NCBI GenBank assembly: GCA_010909165.1
Contig: VJWM01000011.1
Span: 682,001-746,000, forward strand
Reading direction: 5' to 3'
DNA from: Anthoceros angustus
Lineage: Eukaryota > Plantae > Anthocerotophyta
Length of the DNA stretch: 64,000 bases
A program made the translations under genes and the position numbers. The notes beneath the pieces were generated by a model, which ran no database searches, was not told the origin of the DNA, and saw only the letters and a program-made list of their open reading frames with translations. Within the stretch, counting starts at the first letter, position 1, and every line of letters starts with the position of its first letter. Positions 15,294 through 45,710 of the stretch are shown one piece after another.

Positions 15294-16334
15294 ATGGTGC
15301 TACGAGAGGAAGAGGTCGGGGAGGCCCGGGAGGTGAACAATTGGTTCAGGCAGTGGGTTAGCCAAGTACCGGTGGAGCGGCTGATCCTGGGGCAATATGA
15401 GGAGTATGGGGATGACGCGGTTCCAGCATGCGATCAGTGTGCTGAGGTTTGTGAATGGGTGTACTTCTCCAGGTATGGTTCGGGCAAGACGGCATTCGGC
15501 AGGATGTGGTTGTGGGGATTTGTGGGCTGTTGGGGAGAGGATGTTTCTCGAGGTGGGTCGGTGGGTGGGTGACTGAGTGACTGATTCGATTCATGGGTTA
15601 TTGTTGTGAATTGCAGGAAGCAGGGTAGGGGCGGGGAAGTCATCGTGTGCGGGAAATGCGTGGATCGTGTTCAGCATGGGGCTGGCACTGGGCAGTGGAA
15701 GCAGTTTGTCAGGGAAGGGCTCGAACAGCACATGGGAGCCTGCGAAAGGCTGTCGAACCGAGCTGGGCAGCTTCTGACAGGAGCCCCCGAACCCCGCCCA
15801 GCTCCTGCCCAAGCTCCACCTCAACATGGCATTGATTTTGCCCTAGTCCCTGTGGCTCCTCCTGCCCAGGTTCCTCCTCAACTTCCTCTTCAGCTTGCTC
15901 TAGCGCCTGAAGCCCCTCCTGCCCAACCTCCAGCAGTGCCTGCATCCGAAGGGTGTCCCCTCGCTGCTCAGCCTCGACTTGTTCTCCAACCAGGCCGAGG
16001 ACCCACCAGAAAGGATAAATCAGAATGGAGGCGATACAACGCAATGGAGGTCAGGAATCGAAGGTGGGCAGATCAGCTGGTGCCCATTGTTTATGACTAC
16101 TTTGACCTGGGTCCCGACTACAAATGCAACACTCTTGACATAATGCGTCGCTACCAGGAGAGTTATGGGTGCGACCATGATCCCTTATCTCTCCCTTCCT
16201 TGTATAAAATCCTGCCAAGGCTGGGTTTGGAGATTGGGCAGGAAACCATGTTCCACTTTGGGAATCGGGCCTATCGCGAAGTTTATGGTCTGACGCCGAA
16301 GAAGGACAATGGGCTGCCGAAAAGCAAAACATAG
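15294..16334 (+). CDS. Orphan 298-aa protein: C4 zinc finger, Pro/Ala/Gln-rich linker, C-terminal winged-helix-like domain (exons 15294-15472, 15617-16334)
   Basis: Splicing the GT-AG intron 15473-15616 gives an open frame that joins CDQC...CGKC. The C-terminus VYDYFDLGPDYKCNTLDIMRRYQESY...LYKILPRLG...GNRAYREVYGLTPK resembles RFX/D5-primase-type winged helices. Confidence 0.6.
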
Positions 16335-16671
16335 TGATGGCTTCTGCTGGAGAAGAAACCTCGCATAACTGTTGCCTGAAGAACCGCCCATCTCTGCCCT
16401 CCTCACCCTCGTCCCCGGAGCTGCTTTCCCACTCTCCACTTTACATAATACGGTGACGATTAGCATAAGGTTCTTCCGTTGGGTGAAGTTGCTGCACCCG
16501 CCTTGCGGGACTTTCTTAATTTTGTATAGTTAAAAATTGAAATACTCACTCTTGGAGCTTGAAGAAGGAGAGAGTAACCCTGGAGACTTTATTATGAAAA
16601 GGAGATGGGAAACCCATCTGCCCTCAAACTAGTACACTTCTCAGCAGATACCAACACAGATGATTCTCCAT

Positions 16672-16980
16672 GCATCCACATTTTTGGAGCCCCGCAGCAA
16701 AACCATTTTGAAACGCCAGAAGCCGGCTGGACCATCGAGAATCGTTCTCTGCCAGACGGTCGATCGATCCCAGCTCCTCGGATGTGATGCAGCGTTCATC
16801 CTGGTGGGCAATGACGTCCTGCAGAGACACCTTCGACTCCCCTTCGGTGCACAGGCTGCCCAGATCTCCGATCAGCGAGAAGGAGCCGTTTTCCTTCACC
16901 AGTACACGGAACACTCTCAGCTCGTGTTGGATGGGCAGCACCAACACGGCTCCGAATGTCTTCCACACCACTTCAGGCAA
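16672..16980 (-). pseudogene. Gasdermin-like gene fragment (copy A, divergent, truncated at both ends)
   Basis: VVWKTFGAVLVLPIQHELRVFRVLVKENGSFSLIGDLGSLCTEG...WSSRLLAFQNG aligns by eye to residues ~14-105 of the intact ORF at 19620-20486. Confidence 0.85.
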
Positions 16981-17296
16981 TGAAGCACTGGCCCCCATCA
17001 AGCTTGCCAAGGATTCTGCTCCTACCCACTTAAGCTGCTTGTGCTTTCCTGCTGCCTGTGCTGCTGCTGGGATGCGGAATTTGGAGAAGCGGGCTCACTC
17101 GCTCTCAGCCCACCTTCTCCGAGACACGACTGAGACGAAAAGCGTTCATTGGCGTAGAGGTGAAGCACATCGCATTCTTTTTCCACTTTCGAGGACACGT
17201 GGCGGGCCGAGCAGCAACGGGATGCAAGGGAGGAGAGTATGGACGAGAGAGTAGTAGAGCAGGAGAGCATGGAAGGAACCAGGGCAGAGCTGGTGG

Positions 17297-18142
17297 ATGG
17301 AAGCAGGAGGGCGCCCTGAGAAGAAATTTCAGTGTCCCGAGTTCTACTCCACACTCATAAGAAAGCTTTGCTGGTCTTCACCATGGTTCACTTACCAGCC
17401 TTCAATCAGCGGTGTGCAGGTATCGTCTCAGGAATGCACTATCGGTGCAGAAAACAGTAGTCTGCTTATGGTAATGTCTTCTCATTTGTCCTTTTGTGCT
17501 CATTTCTGTTCAGGCTGGCATGCACTTGGCAGGAGAAACGTCTCACAGCCTCCTTGTGTGGATGAACAGGAGGTAGCTCATGGACGTCAGGGAGGAAAGA
17601 AGGAGCAAGTTGTAGGGCTGTAGCTGTAGCTTTTGATTTCAAGAAACAAGGCCAGAGCTCTGGTGGAATGATTTTTTGGATCGTTTGCACACGAGATGTG
17701 TATTCTACGGCATCTTGATCCTGACCAGCCCTGGCAGGCTGGGACAGGATGTCCCTCATTATTAAATTGCTTCGGAGGTCTTTGACGATGACAAAAGACA
17801 AAGCGGGAAGTAGCAGACACCGCAGCTAGTGCCAGTGCCAGCCTCTTAAACGACATCAAATTTCAGCTGTTGAAATGTGAAGGAGATTTACTTTTCACGC
17901 GTCACCGACAGCACAAACATGTGTCTGTAGGTACTATAGTGCTGTCCTTCAGAATGGTTGCGTGTCGTTGCAGGACTTTGAATGGCGGTTACGCGTAAAC
18001 AGCAGCAAATGACGAGGTCCAGGCTGTGGGAGCTTGCTTCCTGCAGCTGACGCCTTTCCTGGATGGCACTCTCGTGCACCTGGAATTACCTGTGCCGGAA
18101 TTTTGCAACCTGTTGTCAGCGCTTGAGAGGTTGAAAGCCTAG
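17297..18142 (+). pseudogene. 3' fragment of a Roco-caspase gene (end of caspase small subunit plus C-terminal extension exons)
   Basis: KFQCPEFYSTLIRKL matches the caspase p10 end (KQxPExxSTLxK). The DNA is homologous to 45650-46258 and 52750-53606, with in-frame stops at codons that are Trp in the 45.9-kb copy. Confidence 0.75.
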
Positions 18143-18451
18143 CTGGATCACCTTGGACTCAAGTCAGACTGCGAATGGTTTCCGGTTGCGGCGCCGTTTG
18201 TAGGCGCTGAGATGCTGAGGCACCGAGGGTGGGGCTGTGAAAGCTGGTAAGAAGCAGAGCAAGTTAGGTTGTATCATCAGGAAGGATGGATGGGTTAACG
18301 TTGGATCAGTGAGATGGATTCGCGTACCAAAGCATGGATTCTTCTGTGGCTGCCTTGCTGCTTCAGCGTCATCTCTGGTCTTCATTGCCTGGGTGTGGAT
18401 TGCTGTAGTTCAATGTGAGTTTTACTGTTTGCTTTGTTCGTGGCTTTTCCC

Positions 18452-19510
18452 AGGGGTATAGGGTGACAGGATTATACATGTGGTACTAGGATCCGTTAAT
18501 GAACAAGGAAGCCCGACGTGCTCATCTGACTAAGATTATAAGGATGCTAAAGTAGTCTGCGATCAACGATCAACTTGGTGCGTTGATGGCTCACATGATT
18601 GAGGGGTTGATCGTCTATTTTCTTTGCCTCCTACTGTATTGATGATGGGTTTTGTGCATCAGATATCCATCTATTTCATGCTGATTACCACCAGCAGTAC
18701 CGGTGTTATGTGTCTGGGCCTTTGACAAACGATTATGCCCTGGGGCTGGCAGCCAATCCTGACCTCCATTGCAGTACGTTCTTTATGGTGAAAATTGGCA
18801 TTGAAGGTGGTTGATTCTGGTGAGTCTCGTTCGTGAGCAGCAATTTCATTCTTTCCCGGAGACACCCACTTGTTTCTGCACGCTGTCTGTCCACAAAGGC
18901 TACCACTGACTTGTTTATGTGGAAATTTGAGCTGAGAAGCTTGCCACTGGCCATTGTGCAGGTGTGCGTATCGATCAGCAAGGTAAGGTGCGTCTGTTTT
19001 GAGGTGTGGATGGTGATTAAGGATCAGTCCTACTTTCTGGCTTCTGTGGTAAGTGGCCTATTCAGAACTGCTCAGCTCATGCCGTGTCCTGTGAGGACAG
19101 GACAATCAATAATAGCTACCCATGAATTTTGGGTTTGGAGAGGGATGTTGTGTCTTGGAAACCTGCTAAATGTTGACAACCATAAAATGAAGAAGGGAAC
19201 TGCCTTTGAGCATGTCTTGTTCCCTATAGGCACATTGTGAAATCGGAAGTTCGCCAGATCGCAGCCACCGCAGGATTGCCAGTAGCAAGCAAACGACGAA
19301 GCCGAGAGAGAGTTCTGCCGGCAACAGGCATTTCGTGAAATCTTTTCGATCTACAGCACATCGGGATGACACCTGCCCCATGCATCTAAGTCTCGGATAA
19401 TAATCTTGTAGGCACACATGCCGGCAAAGCGGCTTACAGGTATGGGCTACCGGCAAGACTATCTGGAGCAGCAGAACCATGGGTCGTGGTGGGTAAAGAC
19501 ATTAAGGTGG
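18452..19510 (+). pseudogene. mnmA: Decayed tRNA-specific 2-thiouridylase (MnmA/TrmU) gene with introns
   Basis: Motifs GYRVTGLYM, DYKDAKVVCDQ, NDYALGLAANPDLHC, LATGHCA, KDQSYFLASV, LFPIGTL.KSEVRQIA, EPWVVVGKD appear in order. There are stops and frameshifts, and a GTAAGT donor follows YFLASV. Confidence 0.82.
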
Positions 19511-19619
19511 AGCTCAGTCGGAGAACGTGGAACTGAACTGCCCAGTAGATAATGCGGAAGTAGGGTGTAACAGATCTCCAAACCAGACCAAGAAAAGCGA
19601 AAGCAACGGAAAGTCTTAG

Positions 19620-20486
19620 CTAGTCTTCAGCGATAGAAGCGAACCAGTCATCCTCCACAAAATCTTGCATGTGGTCATCCGTGTAGGGGGTGGGATGGGC
19701 CTCCTCCTGCTGCCCAGCGCTCGGCCCTGGAGCAGCATCCCCGGGCCCGTCCGGTTGAATGCTGTTGGGTTTGAAGTTCTTGAGCATGCCGTGCTCGTAC
19801 CGGCATTTCCAGCCTTTGAAGGCCAAAGGCAGAGGACGCACCTCGGAACCCGTGTTAGGCCCGCGGATGTAAATCTTCTGGTGCCCACCGACATTACCTG
19901 ACACGCTCACATCCAGCGGCACGGGCACAAGAGGGGGCAAGCTAGCCCCGACGTGCCCTCCTTTCCCGTCCAGCGCCTCCAGCTCCAGGTATGGAGCTGT
20001 GATAACCTCAGTCACAATCCAAAGATCCAGAGTCCTGTGGTTTGCAAAGTAGAAGTTTTTGTAGTCAGGTTCGAACATTTCCACCGCACGGTGGAAACGG
20101 GGTGTGGACGATACCGACTGATACGAAGGGACAAGAATCTTCCAGGAATGCACATCCGTCATTCCTAGGGATGCCCCTGTCTGAAACGCCAGCAGCTTGG
20201 TGGACCATGAGATGTCATTCACCACTGTGTTGTTGATTGCGCCATATTCCTCCGACCGGCGGATGTAGGTAGGATCTTGGGCGGAGATGATGCGTACCAG
20301 CTCCTCCTTGTCCTTGCCTTCTGCACAGAGTTCGCCCAGATTGCCGATCAGGCGGAACCCTCGCTTGTCCTTCATCAGGACACTGAACACCGCCAGCCCG
20401 GGCTGGATGGGCAACACCGGCACAGCTCCGAATGTGGTCCACAGCATTTTCACCAATGGGTTCCTCCTGTAGGGATCACAAGCCAT
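19620..20486 (-). CDS. Gasdermin-like pore-forming protein (bacterial/fungal-type architecture), 288 aa, intact and intronless (copy B)
   Basis: MAC..NPLVKMLW..FGAVPVLPIQPGL..FSVL.KDKRGFRLIGNLGEL; LWIVTEVITAPYLELEALDGKGGHVGASLP; LPLAFKGWKCRYEHG; low-complexity linker and acidic tail DDHMQDFVEDDWFASIAED. This parallels bacterial gasdermins as I recall them (e.g. CSDPAITYLKRLGYNVVRLPREGIQP...YLGSL; LYVITQVIKS...GGGSIQLDVP; LVFGFKCFEI..KNG). Confidence 0.82.
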   Translation of the reverse strand: MACDPYRRNPLVKMLWTTFGAVPVLPIQPGLAVFSVLMKDKRGFRLIGNLGELCAEGKDKEELVRIISAQDPTYIRRSEEYGAINNTVVNDISWSTKLLAFQTGASLGMTDVHSWKILVPSYQSVSSTPRFHRAVEMFEPDYKNFYFANHRTLDLWIVTEVITAPYLELEALDGKGGHVGASLPPLVPVPLDVSVSGNVGGHQKIYIRGPNTGSEVRPLPLAFKGWKCRYEHGMLKNFKPNSIQPDGPGDAAPGPSAGQQEEAHPTPYTDDHMQDFVEDDWFASIAED

Positions 20487-20511
20487 CGCGCCTTGCCCGA
20501 GGTCACCCAAT

Positions 20512-21034
20512 CCAGCTGCTGCTCCTGCTCTTTCTGCTTCTCCGGCCAGCTACCCAATTCCTGACTTCACAGGATTAAGGTCATTCGCAGCATAGTGATG
20601 ATGGCAACTACAACATACCCAAGAACCGCATTCCTTCCATCTGGATACAAGCTTTGCAAGAAGGAGAGAGGGAGGAAGAGCTCATCTGCACAAACTTGAC
20701 ACATGCCTGAATATTCCGGTTGCCGGACCGGGATGCCTGCTTCCACCGCCCACGCGCCTTCACTCTTCACGCGCCCAGCAGCTGCTCCTGCTCTTTCTGC
20801 TTCTCCGGCCAGCTACCCAATTCCTGACATCACAGGACTAGGGTCATTCGCAGCATAGTGATGGCAACTACAACATACCCAAGAACCGCATTCCTTCCAT
20901 CTGGTTACAAGCTTTGCAAGAAGGAGAGAGGGAGGAAGAGCTCATCTGCACAAACTAGACACATGCCTGAATATTCCGGTTGCCGGACCGGGATGCCTGC
21001 TTCCACCGCCCACGCGCCTTCACTCTTCACGCGC
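20512..21034. repeat. Tandem duplication of a ~262-bp unit directly upstream of the gasdermin start
   Basis: Units 20512-20774 and 20775-21034 are near-identical; the same pair recurs at 55997-56513. Confidence 0.93.
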
Positions 21035-21839
21035 CTGACTGGGTCTCCGGAATGCCTTCACTTCAAAGGTCAAGGTCCACTATGTAGCGTGTGGTGCCGG
21101 ACTGGGGACAGGTCTGATTTGATTACCGAAACACACAGTATTTGATTGAACGCGTCCGGACATATCCGATACCTGTGTGATTGATCAGCGACGTCTGTAC
21201 AGTATGCAGACGCACAGATCAAGTGATTACCAGCAGCCTCATACATTGTGCACACGGAAGATAAGACTAATCGACTGATTACGGTGGTAGAAGTTGGTGA
21301 GATACATCAAAACATCGCAGCCCAATGATTTCACCGTGTTTTGATGAATGCATAAATCTCCAGTTTGTGTTTTGAGCACAGCACTGACACGAAGGATGGA
21401 CCGTCTCATAGTTGAAGACAACAAAGCTATAGCTGTGAAGCTATTAGATCTTCCCACCTCGAATCAAACGACAGTACAAGCAGCAGTGCAGCTTGACTTG
21501 AAGCAATTAATGTGTCTCTCTGAATATGGGTTATTCTCCATAAAGGGTTTGGGTCCCTATTACCAAAAAATGACCCCCGAAAACGGACCAAAATGCATCA
21601 TCTTTAGCAAAACCACTCTTTAGACATGTACTGAAAGACATTGACCATGTTATTTTCTTGTGAACACTTACGCTATGAGGTTTTAAGTTGAAGAAGGTTC
21701 GCGGATTTCACCTTCACAAGGAAGGGATTTCAAGGATTTTTAACAGGTGCTAGAAATCCTAAACACCTCTTTCGCAGGCGATTGTACTTCCTAGCAGGGT
21801 GAACAATAGGCAAACCAAACCAAACTAGTCCAGCAAGCC

Positions 21840-22070
21840 AAATTGCGACGGACGTCCGACGCAACCAACCCACAAAAGAAACAATTCGCATGCCGAAAAG
21901 AAGCAACTGTGCCCAACGTCCGGCGCAACCAACCCGCAAAAGAAACAATTCGTGTCGAAAAGAAGCAATCGGACGTCCGGCGCAACCAACCCGCAAAAGA
22001 AACAATTCGCAAGCCGAAAAGAAGCAACTATGCTGGACGTCCGACGCAATTGTGAGAGAACATTAACCGA
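21840..22070. repeat. Imperfect ~60-bp tandem repeats with GGACGTCC motifs (likely transposon-derived)
   Basis: cgcaaccaaccc(g/a)caaaagaaacaattcg occurs 3 times and ggacgtcc motifs recur to ~22320. Confidence 0.7.
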
Positions 22071-22439
22071 TAGCCTGATCATGGCCATCTCGAGAGGAAC
22101 AAACTACGACTCTAGAAAGTAGCGCTGGACGTCTAGTGCACTGTGAGTACACAACCCTGGGATCTCCATTGTTAGAGTGAAAAATAGAGGAAGGAATTGG
22201 AGCAATGCACCGACGTCGCGATTGGGCGAGTCTTAAAGCCCGGACGTCCGCGCCTTTTCCGAGACCCCAATCTTATGCGCCAGCGTGATGGAAATGGTGG
22301 AGTGGATGCTGACGTCCAAGAAATGTATATATATTATTTGTATCTCCCAATATATCATTTGTTTGGTAAAGGTGTAGATAGACACAATGGTATAAGAACT
22401 CCAAAGTTAAACACGCTTTGGGTTGGATCGCATCAAGAT

Positions 22440-22660
22440 GGGGTGTTTATTTTTGGTGCTTTGAGAACTCCAGGGTTTAGCACTCTTGGGTCGGATTAGT
22501 ACTAGGATGGTTTGCTTGTTTTTGGTGCCTTGAAAACTTTGTAACAACTCCAATCAAGCGCCTTTGAGAACTGTGGTTTAGCACTCTTAGGTCCGATTAG
22601 TACTAGGATGGTTTGTTTATTTTTGGTGCTTTGAAAACTTTGTAACAACTCCACTGTTAA
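22440..22660. repeat. Tandem repeats of gtttagcactctt.ggtc.gattagtactaggatggtttg...aactttgtaacaactcc
   Basis: Two full and one partial unit are visible; a copy lies at ~57840-58070. Confidence 0.75.
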
Positions 22661-23824
22661 GCAACCTAGAGGCGGATCTGGATGGAGTGTTGATTTTAGT
22701 GGTTTCAAAATTTGTAAATCATCCCGGTATCTAGGCGTAAAGTCATGAATATTATTTTTGAAAATCATTTGTTGGTTGATGTTATGTTCCAACATTCGCT
22801 TTTGTATACAACATGTAAAATCGTTTTGCCCTTACTCTATGTGCCCCTACGGATGACTTGCAGCTGGATCTTTTCGATTGGTGCGCCAAATGTCCGGCTC
22901 ATTCGAGTTTGATGCACGTATAGATGCATAAGCCTTGGTTTCTAGATGAGCTACATTTTCCAAAATTTGACATGTATGATGGTGGTTTCTAATGGCCAAC
23001 CTTTTGAAGACGACAATGTTTCACAATGTTTTGCATAGAAGCAAGAAAATAATTAGAATAGATGATTTGTCCTTGAGAAATGAAAGTTCTTGATGACGAA
23101 CACAAGTATAAGAGAGCATTTTCCTGGCCACTGCGAGCCCTAGTGAGAGGCAGCAAGTATTCTGAAGAAAATAGGGCTGATCGCCTAGCCGGGATTTTGA
23201 CCAAATGGCTGAGTATTTTTGAGGCTCAAGGAGGACTGTCACACCCACCGTGACGCCCACTCAGGTTGTGCTAGGTATTCGAGACAAACTATAGCCAAAA
23301 CAGTGGTAGAAAGGGGTTTCTCACAAACGGGTTTTGGAAAAATCCCAACCCTATTTCGTCAAAACCATCCGGTTTGGTTTTTGTTGAGTTTTGTAGGTGT
23401 TCATTCATCGGTTTCGGGCATTCTCGGCTGCACACTTCTGTCGATCATTTACACTGGTGTGGCGCCTTCTACTCAGTTCATGGCTATTTCGTTGGTGTGA
23501 AGGGCGGTGACCTCATTCTTCCATAATTTCGGCATGTCGAGTTTCGCAATTTGTGTGGTTCTCAGAGGTTCAGATACTGGGGAAGAAGCGCATAAGTGCG
23601 CGCTTAAACAAGGGTATGCGCAAACTTGTGCGTGCACAAGGCAAAACGAGTGTGAAACATATCATTCGACTGGGGAAATATGTCTTTTTGGAGGTCTGCG
23701 GATGTGGCGGAAGCCCCGATGACATAAGAAGTTGCACAAATCGGCGGACGTCCACATTGACACACCTCGTCTATCTATCCTATGCCCTAAAGCTACGAAG
23801 AACACCCTATCACCTTTCTATCCT

Positions 23825-26500
23825 CTACGGTGAGCTCCTTTTGATGACCAGGCTTTGATCATTATCAAACATGCCTTCAAAAGTACCAGTAGCCATCCCG
23901 GTTCCATTGCCTCTGCCGCGGGTTCTTGTTGCGATTGGTGCTGAACTGGAAGCCGGATGTCCATCATCATCAGCGCCTGCTTGTCCTTCTACTGCACCCT
24001 TATTTTCGGGATTTTCATCCGAATCAACATTTTCCTCCACTGCGACTTTCTCTGGACATGGGTGGTCTGCCCTGATATCCTCAACCCTATTAACTTCTTG
24101 CACGGCTGGTAGATGTTGAAGTTCGAACAGCTTTGTCTTGATGAGCTCCGGTGTACGGACTTGTAGAGTGCTATCCCTTGCAAAGGAGAACCCGTATGCC
24201 AAAATAAATGTCTCCGATATCAATAGTCGATCCAGATGCTTTGGTCGCTTTTCCGCTGTCGCAATCCCTCTCTATCACTGTTGTGTGGATGCCACATCCT
24301 GGGCCTAGGCATCCGTGATCACCGCACCTTAGCCAACTCCGGCATGATTCCTTCTGGCACAATTTCATGTCCAAGATACTCAATCCGCTTGAATGCAAAC
24401 TTGCACTTTTTCGGATGAGCCCTCAACAAGGTAAGTGGAAGGATAGGAGAATGTATGTTGAGAGGTGAGTGGAAGGATAGGAGAATGTATGCCAATCCAG
24501 TGCTCACTAACCATTTTAAACTGTACAGATCGAATGCCTGTCCCAGCAACGTGTGTCTGGATGCCTCACTTACACCCATGGTTTGCGTACCCTTTTTGGC
24601 AAACCCCATGGCTTGTTCGCGTTCCTCAGCATTGAGCTCTCCTAGCTCCTCTCCCTTCAAGTCTAGGATCATGCCATCTCCTCCTCACCTGAATGCATAA
24701 GATTGTGGCGCGGCGTACTTACCAAAGTCGGCCATGCCCTCCGGATCCTAGCTTCACCAACTCTGTTTACTGGATAAAACGGCAGTTTGTCCATCTTCTT
24801 GACTTGCTGTGAGCACCTTTCCAGTTCCAGAATATCATCAGCAGTCTTCCGTGGTGGAACCGTGAGGCTTCTGTGTTGCTTCAGCGTCTCAAGTCCTGCA
24901 ACATTGGTCCAATAATTGCGAATCCTATGTGCATAAGAGCCACAATGCACAGCATCAATAACCAACTCATTGCCGAACCATGATCAAACCTCCTCATACA
25001 GCGCTCTGACAGCCAGACGCTTGTTCAAAGCTCCACATACGTTTTCCAGTATGTACCAACATCTAGGGTTCACAAGTTGAACCTCCCTCACAACCCGCGC
25101 AACCTCAGCAGCAAGGGAAACACCTTAGCCTTTTCCTCTTCCTGCCACTGAGAAGGTTTTACACTCCCATCCTGCGATGATCATGTCCCTTTGGATGATG
25201 AGCTGTACTGCTTTCTTTCCCACGAGAGTCAGTAGCCGCTCGACAACCTCTCACTGCGTCTTCTCTTAACAGAGATGGAAATAGCTTGCACAACCTAAGA
25301 ATTCGACTTCTAGCCACGACTCTAGCCTTCTCGACACAGGTATAGCTGCAAACCTTGATGCCACATTGAAGCACCGCTTCCAATCCACTGCTGATTCTTG
25401 AGCATAATTCTAACAGGTGAATACCTTTAGAGCTTGCTCTCCATCGCACTACCGAGTTATTGATTCGCCTTCCCTCCGTCTTGGCGGGCTTCACGTTTGA
25501 CATGGATCTCTCAGGACATGTGTCAGTGAGATTCCATGGGCGATTCTCCTTCCTGCGCTGATTCTCTCGAACCCTTGCCTCCTCAAGGTGCTCAGAGTGC
25601 GCAATCTTCAGCACTCCCTTCCGCTCTGCGAGTTTCGATGCCTCCTGAGAGGACAATTCCTCTGTCTCCTCCCATATCTCATGCCTATGCTCAATTTGAG
25701 CACTGGAAGCCATCCTGCTGTCTGGGCCATCTCGCCGTGGCTTGCTGGCATCCTTCACAGCCCTGTCGTTCCTTCTGCCACTTTTGCTCATGTTCAGAGG
25801 AATGTTCGCAATTCGCGAGCAATCCCCTTGCTTCCACAGCGGTCATAGAAGGCTTCTTCATACAGTGGATCAACTCCCATGGTAGGGCCATGTGTGGCAT
25901 CCGCCCCCAACAACACATCATAAGATGTGGCACAAGTCACCAAGCAATGTACCTCCATTGTGGTTGCATCCTCTGTGCCCGGCTTCAACTCGATCTTGAT
26001 CGGTCTCCTGGTCATTCCCATCACCATCTCCTTGGTACCTACAGAAGTAGTGATGCTCACATCGCTTGGTACCAGCTTGCTGCCATACAGCTTGAGAGTT
26101 TATACGAGCTCCTAACAAGATCTTGGATCTCGCCCAAGATCCACCAAAGACATTGATCGGTGCAAAGCCGTCAAAGGTAATCTCCCGGTTTCTATTGTTA
26201 ATCATGGCAACACCTCCTTTACCTCGACGTTCAAGCTTTAGATGATCTCCTCGCAGGCACATCAGACTGCGAACTGGACTCCTCGGCTCCATCTCTTTCC
26301 TGATCCATTCTCTCATGATCTTTTTGAAATGCGAACTCTTGAGTCCAAGCTCCAGCAAATTGACCACAGGAACTTCCATGGCCTTCTCCAATAGTGCTTC
26401 CACATCCATCTCCGGGTTAGAAGCAGCCTACACAACAGTACCATCATCAACTTGCCTAAAGCTTTCAGGCATTTTGCTTTGCTCTCGTTCAGACGTGTCC
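23825..26500 (-). mobile_element. Degenerate Ty3/Gypsy retrotransposon internal region carrying a DNMT3-like C5 cytosine methyltransferase between protease and RT
   Basis: Order on minus strand: gag remnant, protease (LVDLG...SYDVLLG), MTase motifs I (IHLLELCSRISSGLEAVLQCG), IV (DMIIAGWECKTFSVAG), VI (YILENV), VIII (AHRIRNYWTN), IX (EEREQAMGF), X (RHTLLGQAFD), then RT C-terminus KCKFAFKRIEYLGHEIVPEGI. Most of RT and integrase is deleted. Confidence 0.85.
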
Positions 26501-32276: not shown

Positions 32277-33480
32277 GTGCAGCCAGGGTGGTATGTGCCC
32301 GCATCTTTCTTCTATCAGGTCATCAAGAGGTGCATTGCACACAAAGATCTGGGTGCTGGCAGGGGTGTGCATACCCTGATTGTCAGAAGTGGGTATGTGG
32401 CAGCAGATTCTTGGCTAATCACGTCATCCGTGTATGCTGCCTATGGGAGGTTGGAGGATGCGTTGCAGGTTTTGAATGGATTGGCTGCTCCCAATGCTTA
32501 TTCGTGGTCCTCCAGAGTTGAGGCACATGTTGACAATGGACAGGCCAGGCAGGCAATCGAGATCTATTTGAGGATGGAACAGTCATCCCCTATGTTGGCA
32601 GATAATCATCTGTTTGTGGCAGCATTTAAGGCTTGTGCCAGTGCAGAAGATCTGACATCAGGCAGACAGGTCCATTCCGATGTCCTGAGTAGTGTGCTTG
32701 AGCCTGATGTGTTTGTTGGGAGCTGCCTGGTGGAAATGTATGCAAGATGTGGGAGGTTGGATGATGCTCGCACAATCTTTGACAAGTTGGACTCGAGAAC
32801 GTGGTCACATGGAATACGGTGCTTGGAGGGTATGCTCAGGGTGGGCGTGGGCAACTTTGAAGCCCTTGCGCTCTATGCAAGTATGCAAGAGGAGGGAATC
32901 CACCTGCCTGACCATGTCACGTTTTTGTGCCTCCTCAAAGCATGTGCTAGCAGTGGAACACGACACCAGGAAGGCAGCTTCATTCACAAATACAGGAAGC
33001 AGGTGTCGGATCTGAGGTGATGGTGGGGAGCTGCCTCATAGATATGTATGCAAGATGTGGAAGCTTGGATGATGCCCGGACTGCCTTTGACAACATGACC
33101 AGAAGAAATGTGGTGACCTGGAACGTGATGCTCGCAAGATATGCTGATGGTGGGCTAGGTGAAGAAGCCCTGTCTCTTTATGCAACTATGCAACAGGAGG
33201 GCGTTACTTCAGCAGATCACGTAACTTTGTGTGCCTTCTGAAAGCATGTAAAAGCATCGGGGCATTGGAGCAGGGAAGGCAGCTACATGACCAGGTTCAG
33301 GAGATGGGCTGCAAGTTGACGTGGTCATTTCGAGCTGCCTGGTGGACATGAATGCAAAGTGTGGGAGCTGAGAGGATGCCCGCAGGGGTGACTGCCATTG
33401 CTTCTGGGAAGCTACGTGCATCCACGACTTGCTCCAAAGACAGCTCACCTTGGGAGCATCACGTGGCAGAGGAATATACC
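32277..33480 (+). pseudogene. PLS-class pentatricopeptide repeat gene, frameshifted/degenerate
   Basis: DVFVGSCLVEMYARCGRLDDARTIFD, VGSCLIDMYARCGSLDDARTAFDNMTRRNVVTWNVML and DHVTFLCLLKACAS; several frameshifts and stops. Confidence 0.85.
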
Positions 33481-44994: not shown

Positions 44995-45710
44995 GGAAAC
45001 GAAGAGGTTTGGCAATGATTGTGAGTATGGAAGAGGAGACTGGAGGAGTCAGAGAGGCGACTTGAAGCTCTTTTGAGACTTTGGCATTTGATACGATATA
45101 TTAGTGGATGGTTCGAGAGTGTGAAAGCACGATTTAGGAGCGTACAAACTCCCTACCTAGCTAAGGACGATTGCTTTATGTTGCATCAATGCTCATGGGG
45201 GGATTGAAGAAGATGGCAGACAGTACATTCTCACAAGCGGAGCACGGCGGGAGAAGCTATATGTTGATGATGATATTTTGAAGCCCATCTCTGAATCCCC
45301 GTGGCTGAGAGACAAGCCCAAAGTGTTTCTGCTCAATGCTTGTCGAGGCACTGGTAGCCTTATCACAAGCGAGAAAGCTAAGGACTCTGAAGTTGAGAGT
45401 AGCCAAATTGTGAGCAAGAGAGCCGGAGAAGTCCGACTCCTGCATTCTGTGAAGGATTGTCTCATCTTCTTCTCGACCAGTCATGGACAACAGTCCTTTA
45501 GAGATGTTGAGAAAGGCACAAACTTTATCACAGCTTTGATGAAAGCCATCATTGTGGGTCTCAAGAAGGGATGATGTACAGATTTTAACATCGTGATTGC
45601 CGAGGTCACGGAGATAGAAGTCAAGCTCCCAAGTGAAGCGAAGGCGCCGAGAAGAGATCCCAATGTCGAGTTGTACTCCACACTCACAAAAAGCTTTGCT
45701 GGTCTTTACC
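44995..45710 (+). other. Caspase-type (peptidase C14A-like, p20+p10) domain of the Roco gene
   Basis: KRRGLAMIVS; ..LFETLAF; DDCF..CINAHG (His codon 45194-45196); WLRDKPKVFLLNACRG (Cys codon 45341-45343, same frame, 49 codons later); DCLIFFSTSHGQQSFRDVEKGTNFITAL; VELYSTLTKSF. Small indels lie in the p20 N-terminus and an in-frame TGA is at 45572-45574. Confidence 0.85.

Follow-up and report, generated by a model that had tools for sequence, protein, structure and literature searches.

The locus described here raises the question of whether a land plant carries a gasdermin gene of its own, and, if so, where that gene came from and how its product could act. Gasdermins, which are pore-forming proteins, have been shown to mediate cell death in animals, fungi, bacteria and archaea, and the reviews and literature that we searched made no mention of a plant gasdermin. 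The stretch under study (hereafter the window) comprises 64,000 nucleotides of the hornwort Anthoceros angustus (contig VJWM01000011.1, positions 682,001 to 746,000), and a first-pass annotation, made from the sequence alone, had claimed an intact gasdermin ORF of bacterial or fungal type within it. Our analysis indicated that the product of this gene (copy A) is almost certainly a gasdermin homologue, and that copy A is very probably a genuine plant-resident gene. The best overall explanation, which we consider fairly probable, places it in a streptophyte clade that is small and deeply diverged and that comes structurally closest to the short-tailed bacterial gasdermins.

The coding sequence of copy A lies on the minus strand at 19620-20486 and is intact, with an ATG at 20484-20486, 288 codons and a stop at 19620-19622; its identity is indicated by the PADLOC bGSDM profile and by fold matches. 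The minus-strand reading given for it in the ORF list extends further (19620-20510, 296 aa from a TTG). Since an in-frame TAG is located upstream in the same exon (20550-20552), the ATG at 20486 is the first usable start. The gene had been described as GC-rich and intronless. The former was confirmed, with 56.7% GC in the ORF against 49.1% in the window, and the GC3 of copy A was 0.685, where host exons span 0.56-0.75. The latter applies to the coding sequence but not to the transcript, for which the reads point to an intron in the 5' UTR. This probable 142-nt GC..AG intron (20565-20706, minus strand) has a joint seen only in run X2, where the same joint was repeated one repeat unit upstream (20822 to 20966); the region around it (20512-21035), which is 5' UTR and promoter-proximal, is a tandem duplication with a period of 260-264 bp and 96% identity. 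Run X2 was assigned as RNA by a guess from its behaviour, and all reads were in the form of short contigs. Its depth was about 900-1200 across the ORF of copy A but under 130 over most of the flanks, its contigs showed zero mismatches, and one of them gave mismatch-free cover of a 3' UTR of at least 368 nt (19252-19619, minus strand). Copy A is apparently transcribed. In a signal scan, bacterial promoters and terminators were not over-represented around it, and an Rfam scan of the window returned no family. On balance, we believe that copy A is likely to be functional.

Profile searches matched a single family, the bacterial gasdermins, in line with the original assignment. The PADLOC bGSDM profile hit copy A with E 3.4e-8 and 31 bits, covering residues 148-242 only, and the sole NCBIfam match was prok_gasdermin (NF051890), at 13.3 bits versus a cut-off of 100. 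Judged by its sequence, copy A, which misses this curated threshold, is a distant relative of the prokaryotic gasdermins and not an equivalog. Pfam-A gave no family for copy A at E ≤1, Gasdermin_C included, and for copy A together with its relatives nothing apart from a chance match to DUF2187 (E 0.09). No match was returned by a PDB search with the single copy A sequence or by a word-indexed protein search with the single protein. The family profile, when searched against the PDB, had 7n51, 8sl0 and 7n50 as its only significant matches, all of them bacterial gasdermins. The three sequence blocks from which the assignment had originally been made are all present in the translation. Blocks 2 and 3 (beginning LWIVTEVITA and LAFKGWKC) align to the corresponding strands of the Vitiosangium bGSDM, whereas it is only by way of a relative, P0001, that the N-terminal block can be aligned to the bGSDM profile.

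Two AlphaFold models of copy A were obtained (pTM 0.69 and 0.68), and by their structural matches both have the gasdermin N-domain fold, a twisted beta-sheet core with an N-terminal helix. As the first-pass annotation had anticipated, the best structural matches were gasdermins, bacterial ones first, and not some other fold. The top 25 Foldseek matches were all gasdermins, led by 7n51 (E 3e-10). VIA Z scores of the models reached 12.5 (221 aa) to 7n50 and 12.3 (223 aa) to 7n51, and across both models the bacterial proteins scored Z 12.2-12.5 over 212-223 residues. Animal gasdermins ranked next (Z 8.4-11.2), with the Trichoplax protein among the better matches (Z 10.4-11.2), followed by fungal RCD-1 (Z 6.5-8.1), with CDC/MACPF folds at 7 or below. 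The best structural match in the ESM Atlas was a Bact_GSDM cluster (TM 0.60/0.65), and the language-model neighbours of copy A in the same resource included unnamed Ascomycota clusters of similar length. Sequence identity to the bacterial gasdermin structures was 12-17%. Taken together, sequence profile and fold agreed that the protein belongs to the short-tailed microbial type and not to the two-domain animal type.

These bacterial matches could also be accounted for by contamination, that is, by an ORF of a plant-associated bacterium or fungus that was misjoined to plant DNA, and no single read or contig among the short contigs bridges copy A and its flanks. We rejected this reading, which appears exceedingly improbable. 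The codon GC of copy A is host-like, and its DNA-run depth (20-39) is the same as that of its flanks (22-68). The intron-like joint in the 5' UTR occurs alongside a neighbouring transcript that is spliced. Moreover, a 6.7-kb duplication holds two copies with common plant flanks; both copies were found in independent runs, and each was reproduced exactly by independent contigs. Among 1.84 billion representative proteins no bacterial or fungal match was found at E ≤0.001, and the relatives that do exist are on plant-like contigs. PPR, copia, LRR and Roc genes surround copy A, and its physical linkage to plant DNA, which had been claimed, is borne out to the extent that short contigs allow.

Amplification of the gene, also proposed at the outset, was evident from two copies of nearly full length, accompanied by two fragments, within the window, a segmental duplication, and many variants of 90-99% identity in the DNA run. 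The duplicated unit that carries copy A (17300-23971, 6.7 kb) has its counterpart at 52749-59418, with identities of 92.3% and 88.6%. Copy B (55118-55971, minus strand) has 79.8% amino acid identity to copy A, and the RNA-like run contains it as well; as assembled, its reading frame is shifted near codon 25 by a 1-nt deletion, and there are three deletions of 3 nt in addition. One fragment is internally deleted (52227-52579, minus strand) and joins about 107 N-terminal residues to 25 C-terminal ones, and the other is an older N-terminal piece (16624-17010, minus strand), about 50% identical over residues 13-109. The flank holding this older piece had been interpreted as an mnmA relic. No tested ORF at 13.3-19.5 kb gave a tRNA-methyltransferase match, so this interpretation is unsupported, and the flank contains instead the older gasdermin fragment and a remnant of the 3' end of a caspase gene (17320-17660, plus strand). 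The remnant lies inside a spliced plus-strand transcript with GT..AG joints at 17469/17569, 18576/18662 and 18818/18961. A second caspase 3'-end remnant is found at 52593-53417, and such remnants are 2 kb from each gasdermin copy. A larger caspase-type protease piece (45161-45571, plus strand; Peptidase_C14, E 1.8e-13), with the catalytic motifs Ala-His-Gly and Asn-Ala-Cys-Arg-Gly, is a candidate activating protease. It ends an LRR-Roc gene at about 33.8-46 kb, in which the LRR and Roc parts are upstream on the same strand, and which is 25 kb from copy A. The caspase domain of this gene is broken in the assembly by stops and frame changes. Given these stops and the frameshift of copy B, both as assembled, the array may be decaying.

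The proposed transfer from bacteria or fungi did not fare as well as the amplification. Nine distant relatives of copy A, all on plant-like contigs, were recovered by phmmer and a later profile search. The exhaustive phmmer search against the 1.84 billion representatives yielded only six, all starting with Met-Gly. Neighbouring genes could be classified for two of the six, and in both cases they were plant-type NB-ARC/LRR genes. At the locus of relative P0005, two NB-ARC-LRR genes were accompanied by a Peptidase_C14 gene 6.3 kb from the gasdermin; NB-ARC-LRR neighbours of a relative were of the Streptophyta type. Another relative lies 380 bp from a convergently oriented LRR-ARM gene of the plant R type, and a seventh, from the later profile search, has copia retroelements on its contig. 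This later, word-indexed search with the family profile returned plant-like relatives only, none bacterial or fungal. In the form claimed, the transfer finds no support, given the want of any close non-plant relative, the low identity to bacterial structures, the 13 bits against a cut-off of 100, and the Met-Gly relatives beside plant-type genes. Because the relatives are few, start with Met-Gly and have plant contexts, and because bacterial identity is low, the family appears to be old within streptophytes. Ultimately it may have arisen by an ancient transfer or by vertical descent with loss.

Among the relatives dN/dS was 0.26-0.41 at dS 0.5-1.0, and these distant sequences are under purifying selection. 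Between copies A and B, dN/dS was 1.24 (NG86) or 1.84 (ML) and the differences were even across codon positions (23/24/28), a pattern of neutral drift or diversifying selection and not of constraint. The ORF is stop-free after 75 substitutions, for which the chance expectation is 9%. Such figures would suit a decaying relic, a true gasdermin once paired with the Roco-caspase, of which copy A and the array are now drifting neutrally, transcribed but functionless. The frameshift of copy B, the two truncated gasdermin fragments and two caspase remnants in the window, and the stops interrupting the caspase domain as assembled all fit the same account, under which a stop-free ORF is only weakly surprising (P ~0.09). 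We nevertheless regard decay as rather unlikely, since copy A retains 288 codons, every family-invariant residue, the Gln-x-Asp/Gly site (the slash marks the putative cut) and the tail motif, has high coverage in the RNA-like run, and has relatives elsewhere under purifying selection. A raised dN/dS is also usual for immune and allorecognition genes.

A pore-forming core is predicted at residues 9-241 (19764-20462, minus strand) from the AlphaFold models and their Z scores of 12.2-12.5 to 7n50/7n51, and the low-confidence segments at about 91-109 and 180-199 may represent membrane-inserting hairpin regions. The fold ends near residue 241, and 47 residues remain to the end of the protein. Directly after the last strand is a candidate Asp-specific cleavage site, Gln244-Pro245-Asp246/Gly247 (19746-19757, minus strand). 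In the alignment of 11 family sequences D246 and G247 are nearly invariant, and both models place the Asp246/Gly247 bond in a disordered linker. The C-terminal tail of 42 residues (247-288; 19623-19748, minus strand) consists of an acidic linker and a motif at residues 270-285 that is conserved in the family, Asp-(Asp/Glu)-His-Met-x-x-Phe-x-x-Asp-x-Trp-Phe-Ala, and is a candidate autoinhibitory peptide. Since the tail is undocked on the core, with pLDDT below 50 in both models, autoinhibition is named here as a candidate role; a complex prediction of core (1-246) and tail (247-288) scored 0.02, which makes no call either way. Bacterial gasdermins have a palmitoylated N-terminal Cys, and Cys3 of copy A (20478-20480, minus strand) matches its position and may likewise be lipidated. 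A Met-Gly start is a eukaryotic N-myristoylation signal; the relatives have acylation-type N-termini of the form Met-Gly-x-x-Cys-Ser, and copy A is without Gly2.

We propose, as a probable reading, that this resident plant gasdermin gene works by tail release through a linked Asp-specific protease. The 288-residue protein would be kept inactive by its 42-residue tail, by means of the Asp-Asp-His-Met...Trp-Phe-Ala motif. Once a linked sensor had been activated, a protease with Asp specificity, for which the caspase domain of the LRR-Roc protein nearby is the likeliest candidate, would cut after Asp246 in the conserved Gln-x-Asp/Gly. The freed core of about 27 kDa would then oligomerise, with membrane targeting perhaps aided by Cys3 acylation, and would insert beta-hairpins to form large pores, leading to cell death as a defence or self/non-self response. 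For the single step of activation by Asp-directed tail cleavage, read from sequence features, we see an even chance.

A functional protein of gasdermin fold may instead follow another route or serve another role, being cut by a different Asp protease such as a phytaspase-type subtilase, activated without cleavage, or acting as a non-lethal channel or secretion conduit, with the Roco-caspase linkage arising simply from local duplication. Cleavage-free activation is reported for the gasdermin of Trichoplax and for fungal RCD-1, and the former is among the better fold matches of copy A (Z 10.4-11.2). Furthermore, the caspase gene is 25 kb off and not adjacent, with only remnants close by, and some relatives have NLR-type neighbours but no protease detected in the DNA around them. 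Plant phytaspases with Asp specificity are known (PMC8851545). Even so, this second account seems quite improbable to us: an inhibitor released by cleavage predicts just this combination of a conserved Asp-Gly right after the fold and a conserved tail behind it, and linkage of protease and gasdermin recurs in bacteria, in fungi and at the P0005 locus.

A transcribed plant gasdermin in a sensor-fused caspase array, with NLR-adjacent relatives, would bring the protease-gasdermin module to a fourth kingdom, and would offer a testable candidate for a missing executioner of plant cell death. Hornworts are transformable, and knock-outs are therefore feasible. The clade mixes bacterial architecture, an animal-like Asp site and, in the relatives, eukaryotic acylation motifs, and so bears on the choice between inheritance and repeated acquisition of eukaryotic gasdermins. 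According to a published review (PMC9104976), true caspases "do not exist in plants". More speculatively, some land plants (hornworts and other streptophytes with relatives) might keep a complete pyroptosis-like pathway, in which an LRR-Roc or NLR sensor, a true caspase-type protease and a lipid-anchored, short-tailed gasdermin cut after a conserved Asp would produce lethal pores; such a gasdermin would be an executioner of plant cell death distinct from a resistosome channel, and the loss of this pathway in seed-plant models would lie behind the textbook view that plants have neither caspases nor gasdermins. This wider proposal is tentative, and our own judgement leans somewhat against it.

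Compared with animal gasdermins (GSDMD, GSDME, GSDMA3, GSDMB and that of Trichoplax), copy A shares the same pore-forming fold. In GSDMD and GSDME, caspases activate the protein by cutting after an Asp in the linker, and the Gln-x-Asp/Gly of copy A resembles their caspase sites. Unlike the animal proteins, copy A is much shorter, has an acylation-type N-terminus, is without the C-terminal repressor domain of about 200 residues, and matches neither Pfam PF04598 (Gasdermin) nor PF17708 (Gasdermin_C). Among fungal systems, HET-Q1, which is paired with HET-Q2 or TPR-CHAT proteases, is likewise eukaryotic and short-tailed; a protease encoded next to it cuts off a tail of about 5 kDa, and about 20% of the proteases found in this position are caspase-like and repeat-fused (PMC8851545). 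The 42-residue tail of copy A is of about the same size. In HET-Q1, however, a subtilase cuts after Phe238, and in copy A the residue conserved at the site is Asp. Solved structures of RCD-1 match copy A less well (Z 6.5-8.1) than do bacterial or animal ones, and the phmmer search of the 1.84 billion representatives found no fungal protein matching it at E ≤0.001.

The bacterial gasdermins, represented here by 7n50 (Bradyrhizobium), 7n51, 8sl0 and 9a84 (Vitiosangium), 7n52 (Runella) and the profiles Pfam PF26164, NCBIfam NF051890 and PADLOC PDLC02986, provide the closest comparison. Copy A differs from them in being a gene of a eukaryote that has UTRs and, probably, an intron in the 5' UTR, in a longer (42 aa), acidic tail with a conserved motif of its own, in a predicted cut after Asp, in having relatives with eukaryotic Met-Gly acylation motifs, and in a candidate partner that is an LRR-Roc(-COR)-caspase and not a bacterial protease operon. 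On the other hand, they give the best fold match and the sole profile match, and copy A resembles them in its single domain of about 250-290 residues, in a short C-terminal tail in place of a repressor domain, and in a Cys at position 3. Proteases of bacterial gasdermins are fused to LRR, TPR, WD40 or NACHT domains (PMC8866957), and copy A, too, has in its genomic neighbourhood a caspase-family protease with fused sensor repeats, in a linkage that, at 25 kb, is looser than adjacency.

On the minus strand, the ORF listing of the window gave a reading frame spanning 19620..20510, within which the gasdermin gene studied here (copy A) encodes 288 residues from an ATG at 20486 to a stop at 19620-19622. 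A start upstream of this ATG was ruled out because an in-frame TAG lies at 20550-20552 in the same exon. The GC content of copy A was 56.7%, versus 49.1% for the whole window. The first-pass annotation had described an intact gasdermin ORF with three sequence blocks (an N-terminal block, the LWIVTEVITA block and the LAFKGWKC block). Our analysis confirmed the intact frame, 288 codons followed by a stop, and all three blocks were found in the translation.

A Pfam-A search of copy A matched no family. The profiles that did match were those of gasdermins: the PADLOC bacterial gasdermin profile matched residues 148-242 with an E of 3.4e-8, and the sole NCBIfam match was prok_gasdermin, at 13 bits and thus below its curated cut-off of 100. 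When a profile of copy A and its relatives was compared with 177,635 PDB sequences, only three matches were significant, the bacterial gasdermins 7n51, 8sl0 and 7n50 (E 5.5e-4 to 2.7e-3), and a larger family alignment gave the same result. In the PDB profile alignment, Leu-Trp-Ile-Val-Thr-Glu-Val-Ile of the second block was aligned to Leu-Tyr-Val-Ile-Thr-Gln-Val-Ile of the Vitiosangium gasdermin, and the third block to the next strand of that protein.

Two AlphaFold models, built from alignments of 7 sequences (model 1; pTM 0.69, mean pLDDT 64.9) and 11 sequences (model 2; pTM 0.68, pLDDT 69.3), had the same topology. In Foldseek against the PDB, the best 25 matches listed were all gasdermins, headed by bacterial ones (7n51, E 3e-10; 7n50, E 5.6e-9). 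An independent structure alignment against representatives likewise placed bacterial gasdermins first, with Z-scores of 12.5 for 7n50 (221 residues), 11.7 for 8sl0 and 10.7 for 7n52. Next came the gasdermins of Trichoplax and animals (Z 10.5-8.2), then fungal RCD-1 (7.7-7.0) and CDC/MACPF toxins (at most 6.5); model 2 ranked the matches in the same order as model 1. In a comparison of shape, the ESM Atlas cluster closest to copy A was a Bact_GSDM cluster (TM 0.60/0.65). A non-gasdermin best match, which would have spoken against the annotated fold, was thus not what we observed. Collectively, three independent kinds of test, namely profile, fold and family context, support copy A as a gasdermin.

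Searched exhaustively with phmmer, 1.84 billion representatives yielded only six relatives (E 4e-17 to 2.5e-7), and a profile search added three. None is named, and none has a Pfam domain in a Pfam search. Every relative starts with Met-Gly, several with Met-Gly-Asn-x-Cys-Ser-Ser, which is the eukaryotic myristoylation/palmitoylation pattern. The genomic contexts of these relatives are plant-like. For P0005, an NB-ARC-LRR gene that falls among Streptophyta resistance proteins lies 1.9 kb away and a Peptidase_C14 gene 6.3 kb away. P0003 (L009:183-1205), the nearest-type relative, stands tail to tail, across a gap of 380 bp, with a gene (L009:1585-2631, minus strand) that has plant resistance-type LRRs at its end and then armadillo repeats, and the 117-kb contig of P0007 bears copia elements. 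The P0005 contig (JGI sample 3300059835) holds six genes on one strand within 11 kb, in the order NB-ARC-LRR, unknown, Peptidase_C14 (275 aa), unknown, NB-ARC-LRR and gasdermin relative; its C14 gene encodes either a caspase or an ordinary metacaspase.

Transfer from bacteria or fungi, as proposed in the first-pass annotation, was not supported. Neither search found a close bacterial or fungal relative, the identity of copy A to bacterial gasdermin structures was 12-17%, and the family occurred in several plant-like sources with GC contents from 35% to 52%; recent transfer is therefore unsupported. The family may have reached plants by ancient transfer or by vertical descent. No plant gasdermin turned up in full-text literature searches, with most subscription journals outside their reach, and an evolutionary gasdermin survey mentions plants nowhere (PMC8742441).

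In order to place copy A in the plant genome we considered composition, read data and surroundings. Its GC3 was 0.685, with 0.56-0.75 for the other coding ORFs of the window. In a DNA run under the same organism label, depth was 20-39 over copy A and 22-68 in its flanks; read data were short contigs throughout, none spanning copy A plus its flanks. A second run, X2, shares its sample with the DNA run and behaves like RNA, and GT..AG joints of the neighbouring plus-strand transcript were seen in X2 alone. Also confined to X2 was a 142-nt joint, 20564->20707, with GC..AG ends on the minus strand, which is probably a 5' UTR intron of copy A. X2 depth reached about 900-1200 over copy A, with flanks mostly below 130, and included zero-mismatch contigs on copy A. 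Elsewhere in the window lie a PPR gene, pieces of copia and other retroelements, an intron-bearing ABC transporter and an LRR-Roc gene. Contamination as the source of copy A was rejected on its host-like GC3, flank-like DNA depth, UTR joint and plant gene surroundings. A run filed under another organism label, X3, contained two low-depth contigs 100% identical to copy A at 19617-19822 and 20321-20493 and nothing from its flanks; they could come from this species filed under a second label, from RNA or from carry-over.

Amplification of the gasdermin, also proposed earlier, was supported by duplicated 6.7-kb units, two copies and further fragments. The unit carrying copy A (17300-23971) has a duplicate at 52749-59418 (92% and 89% identical), and this second unit contains copy B (55118-55971), 79.8% identical to copy A in protein. 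Variant contigs in both runs agreed with copy B at 12/12 listed positions, and one showed exactly 26 differences, the number expected for copy B; both copies are therefore present in independent data. Judged from these contigs, both appear to be transcribed. As assembled, copy B has four deletions (3, 3, 1 and 3 nt), all within its first 110 coding nt (region 55860-55975). The adjoining 5' UTR is identical to that of copy A at 74/74 positions; this pattern is odd for decay and might stem from an error in the assembly or the consensus.

Each unit is accompanied by one gasdermin fragment that is older or truncated (16624-17010; 52227-52579), with a caspase-gene 3'-end remnant beside it (17320-17660; 52593-53417), and a tandem duplication of 260-264 bp covers the 5' UTR region of copy A. 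Between the units, the plus-strand LRR-Roc gene comprises LRRs, a Roc domain and, at its end, a Peptidase_C14 piece (E 1.8e-13) that bears the caspase-type motifs Ala-His-Gly and Asn-Ala-Cys-Arg-Gly; stops interrupt this caspase domain in the assembly used. A PPR-repeat ORF (32277-33020, plus strand) lies directly upstream of this LRR-Roc gene.

Several further features were observed around copy A. A spliced plus-strand transcript at 17300-19100 (GT..AG joints 17469/17569, 18576/18662 and 18818/18961) crosses the caspase remnant towards the 3' end of copy A; it is either a pseudogene tail that is transcribed or an overlapping transcript in convergent orientation. One DNA-run contig joins 19636->20781 with six other letters between, skipping the whole of copy A (1144 nt); its shorter side is only 36 nt, and it may represent a paralogous or allelic locus without the gasdermin. 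Contigs of the DNA run and X2 jump back about 1470 nt (21460->19986/19996), pointing to another genomic copy in which upstream sequence and gasdermin body are arranged differently. Upstream of the gasdermin unit, a 57-64-bp tandem repeat occurs in about three copies (21849-22049), and DNA-run depth was zero at 21831-22027. A 242-aa ORF (15606-16334, plus strand), Pro/Ala-rich in its first half and well formed in its C-terminal half, had no Pfam match.

Among five relatives, dN/dS was 0.26-0.41 with dS unsaturated, so selection maintains the family. As evidence against function of copy A itself, dN/dS between copies A and B was 1.24 (NG86) or 1.84 (ML), and their differences were evenly distributed across codon positions. 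In simulations, 9% of runs stayed free of stops by chance after 75 substitutions. This pattern, which rests on two sequences, fits drift and diversifying selection alike.

In both models the fold of copy A stops at about residue 241, and residues 245-288 are disordered. In the 11-sequence alignment Asp246-Gly247 is nearly invariant, with Gln at -2 in most members, and about 25 residues further on the tail has a conserved motif of its own, Asp-[Asp/Glu/Pro]-His-Met-x-x-Phe-x-x-Asp-x-Trp-Phe-Ala. The protein would comprise a core that forms pores, a flexible linker in which the candidate cut site is conserved, and, at the C-terminus, a conserved peptide of about 4.6 kDa. Because the conserved Asp would occupy P1, an Asp-specific enzyme is the candidate protease, cutting after Asp246; the obvious candidate would be the caspase-type domain that the linked LRR-Roc gene encodes, with plant phytaspases as the Asp-specific alternative. 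Cys3 of copy A occupies the position at which bacterial gasdermins are palmitoylated, and together with the relatives' acylation motifs it suggests anchoring of the gasdermin to membranes. A pyroptosis-like mechanism, by analogy with known systems, is a coherent hypothesis for copy A. Bacterial gasdermin proteases are fused to LRR, TPR, WD40 or NACHT modules (PMC8866957), and about 20% of the proteases encoded beside such fungal gasdermins are caspase-like domains fused to repeats (PMC8851545). The anatomy of copy A matches short-tailed gasdermins: in fungal HET-Q1 a tail of about 5 kDa is removed by a protease encoded next door (PMC8851545), compared with about 4.6 kDa for the tail of copy A.
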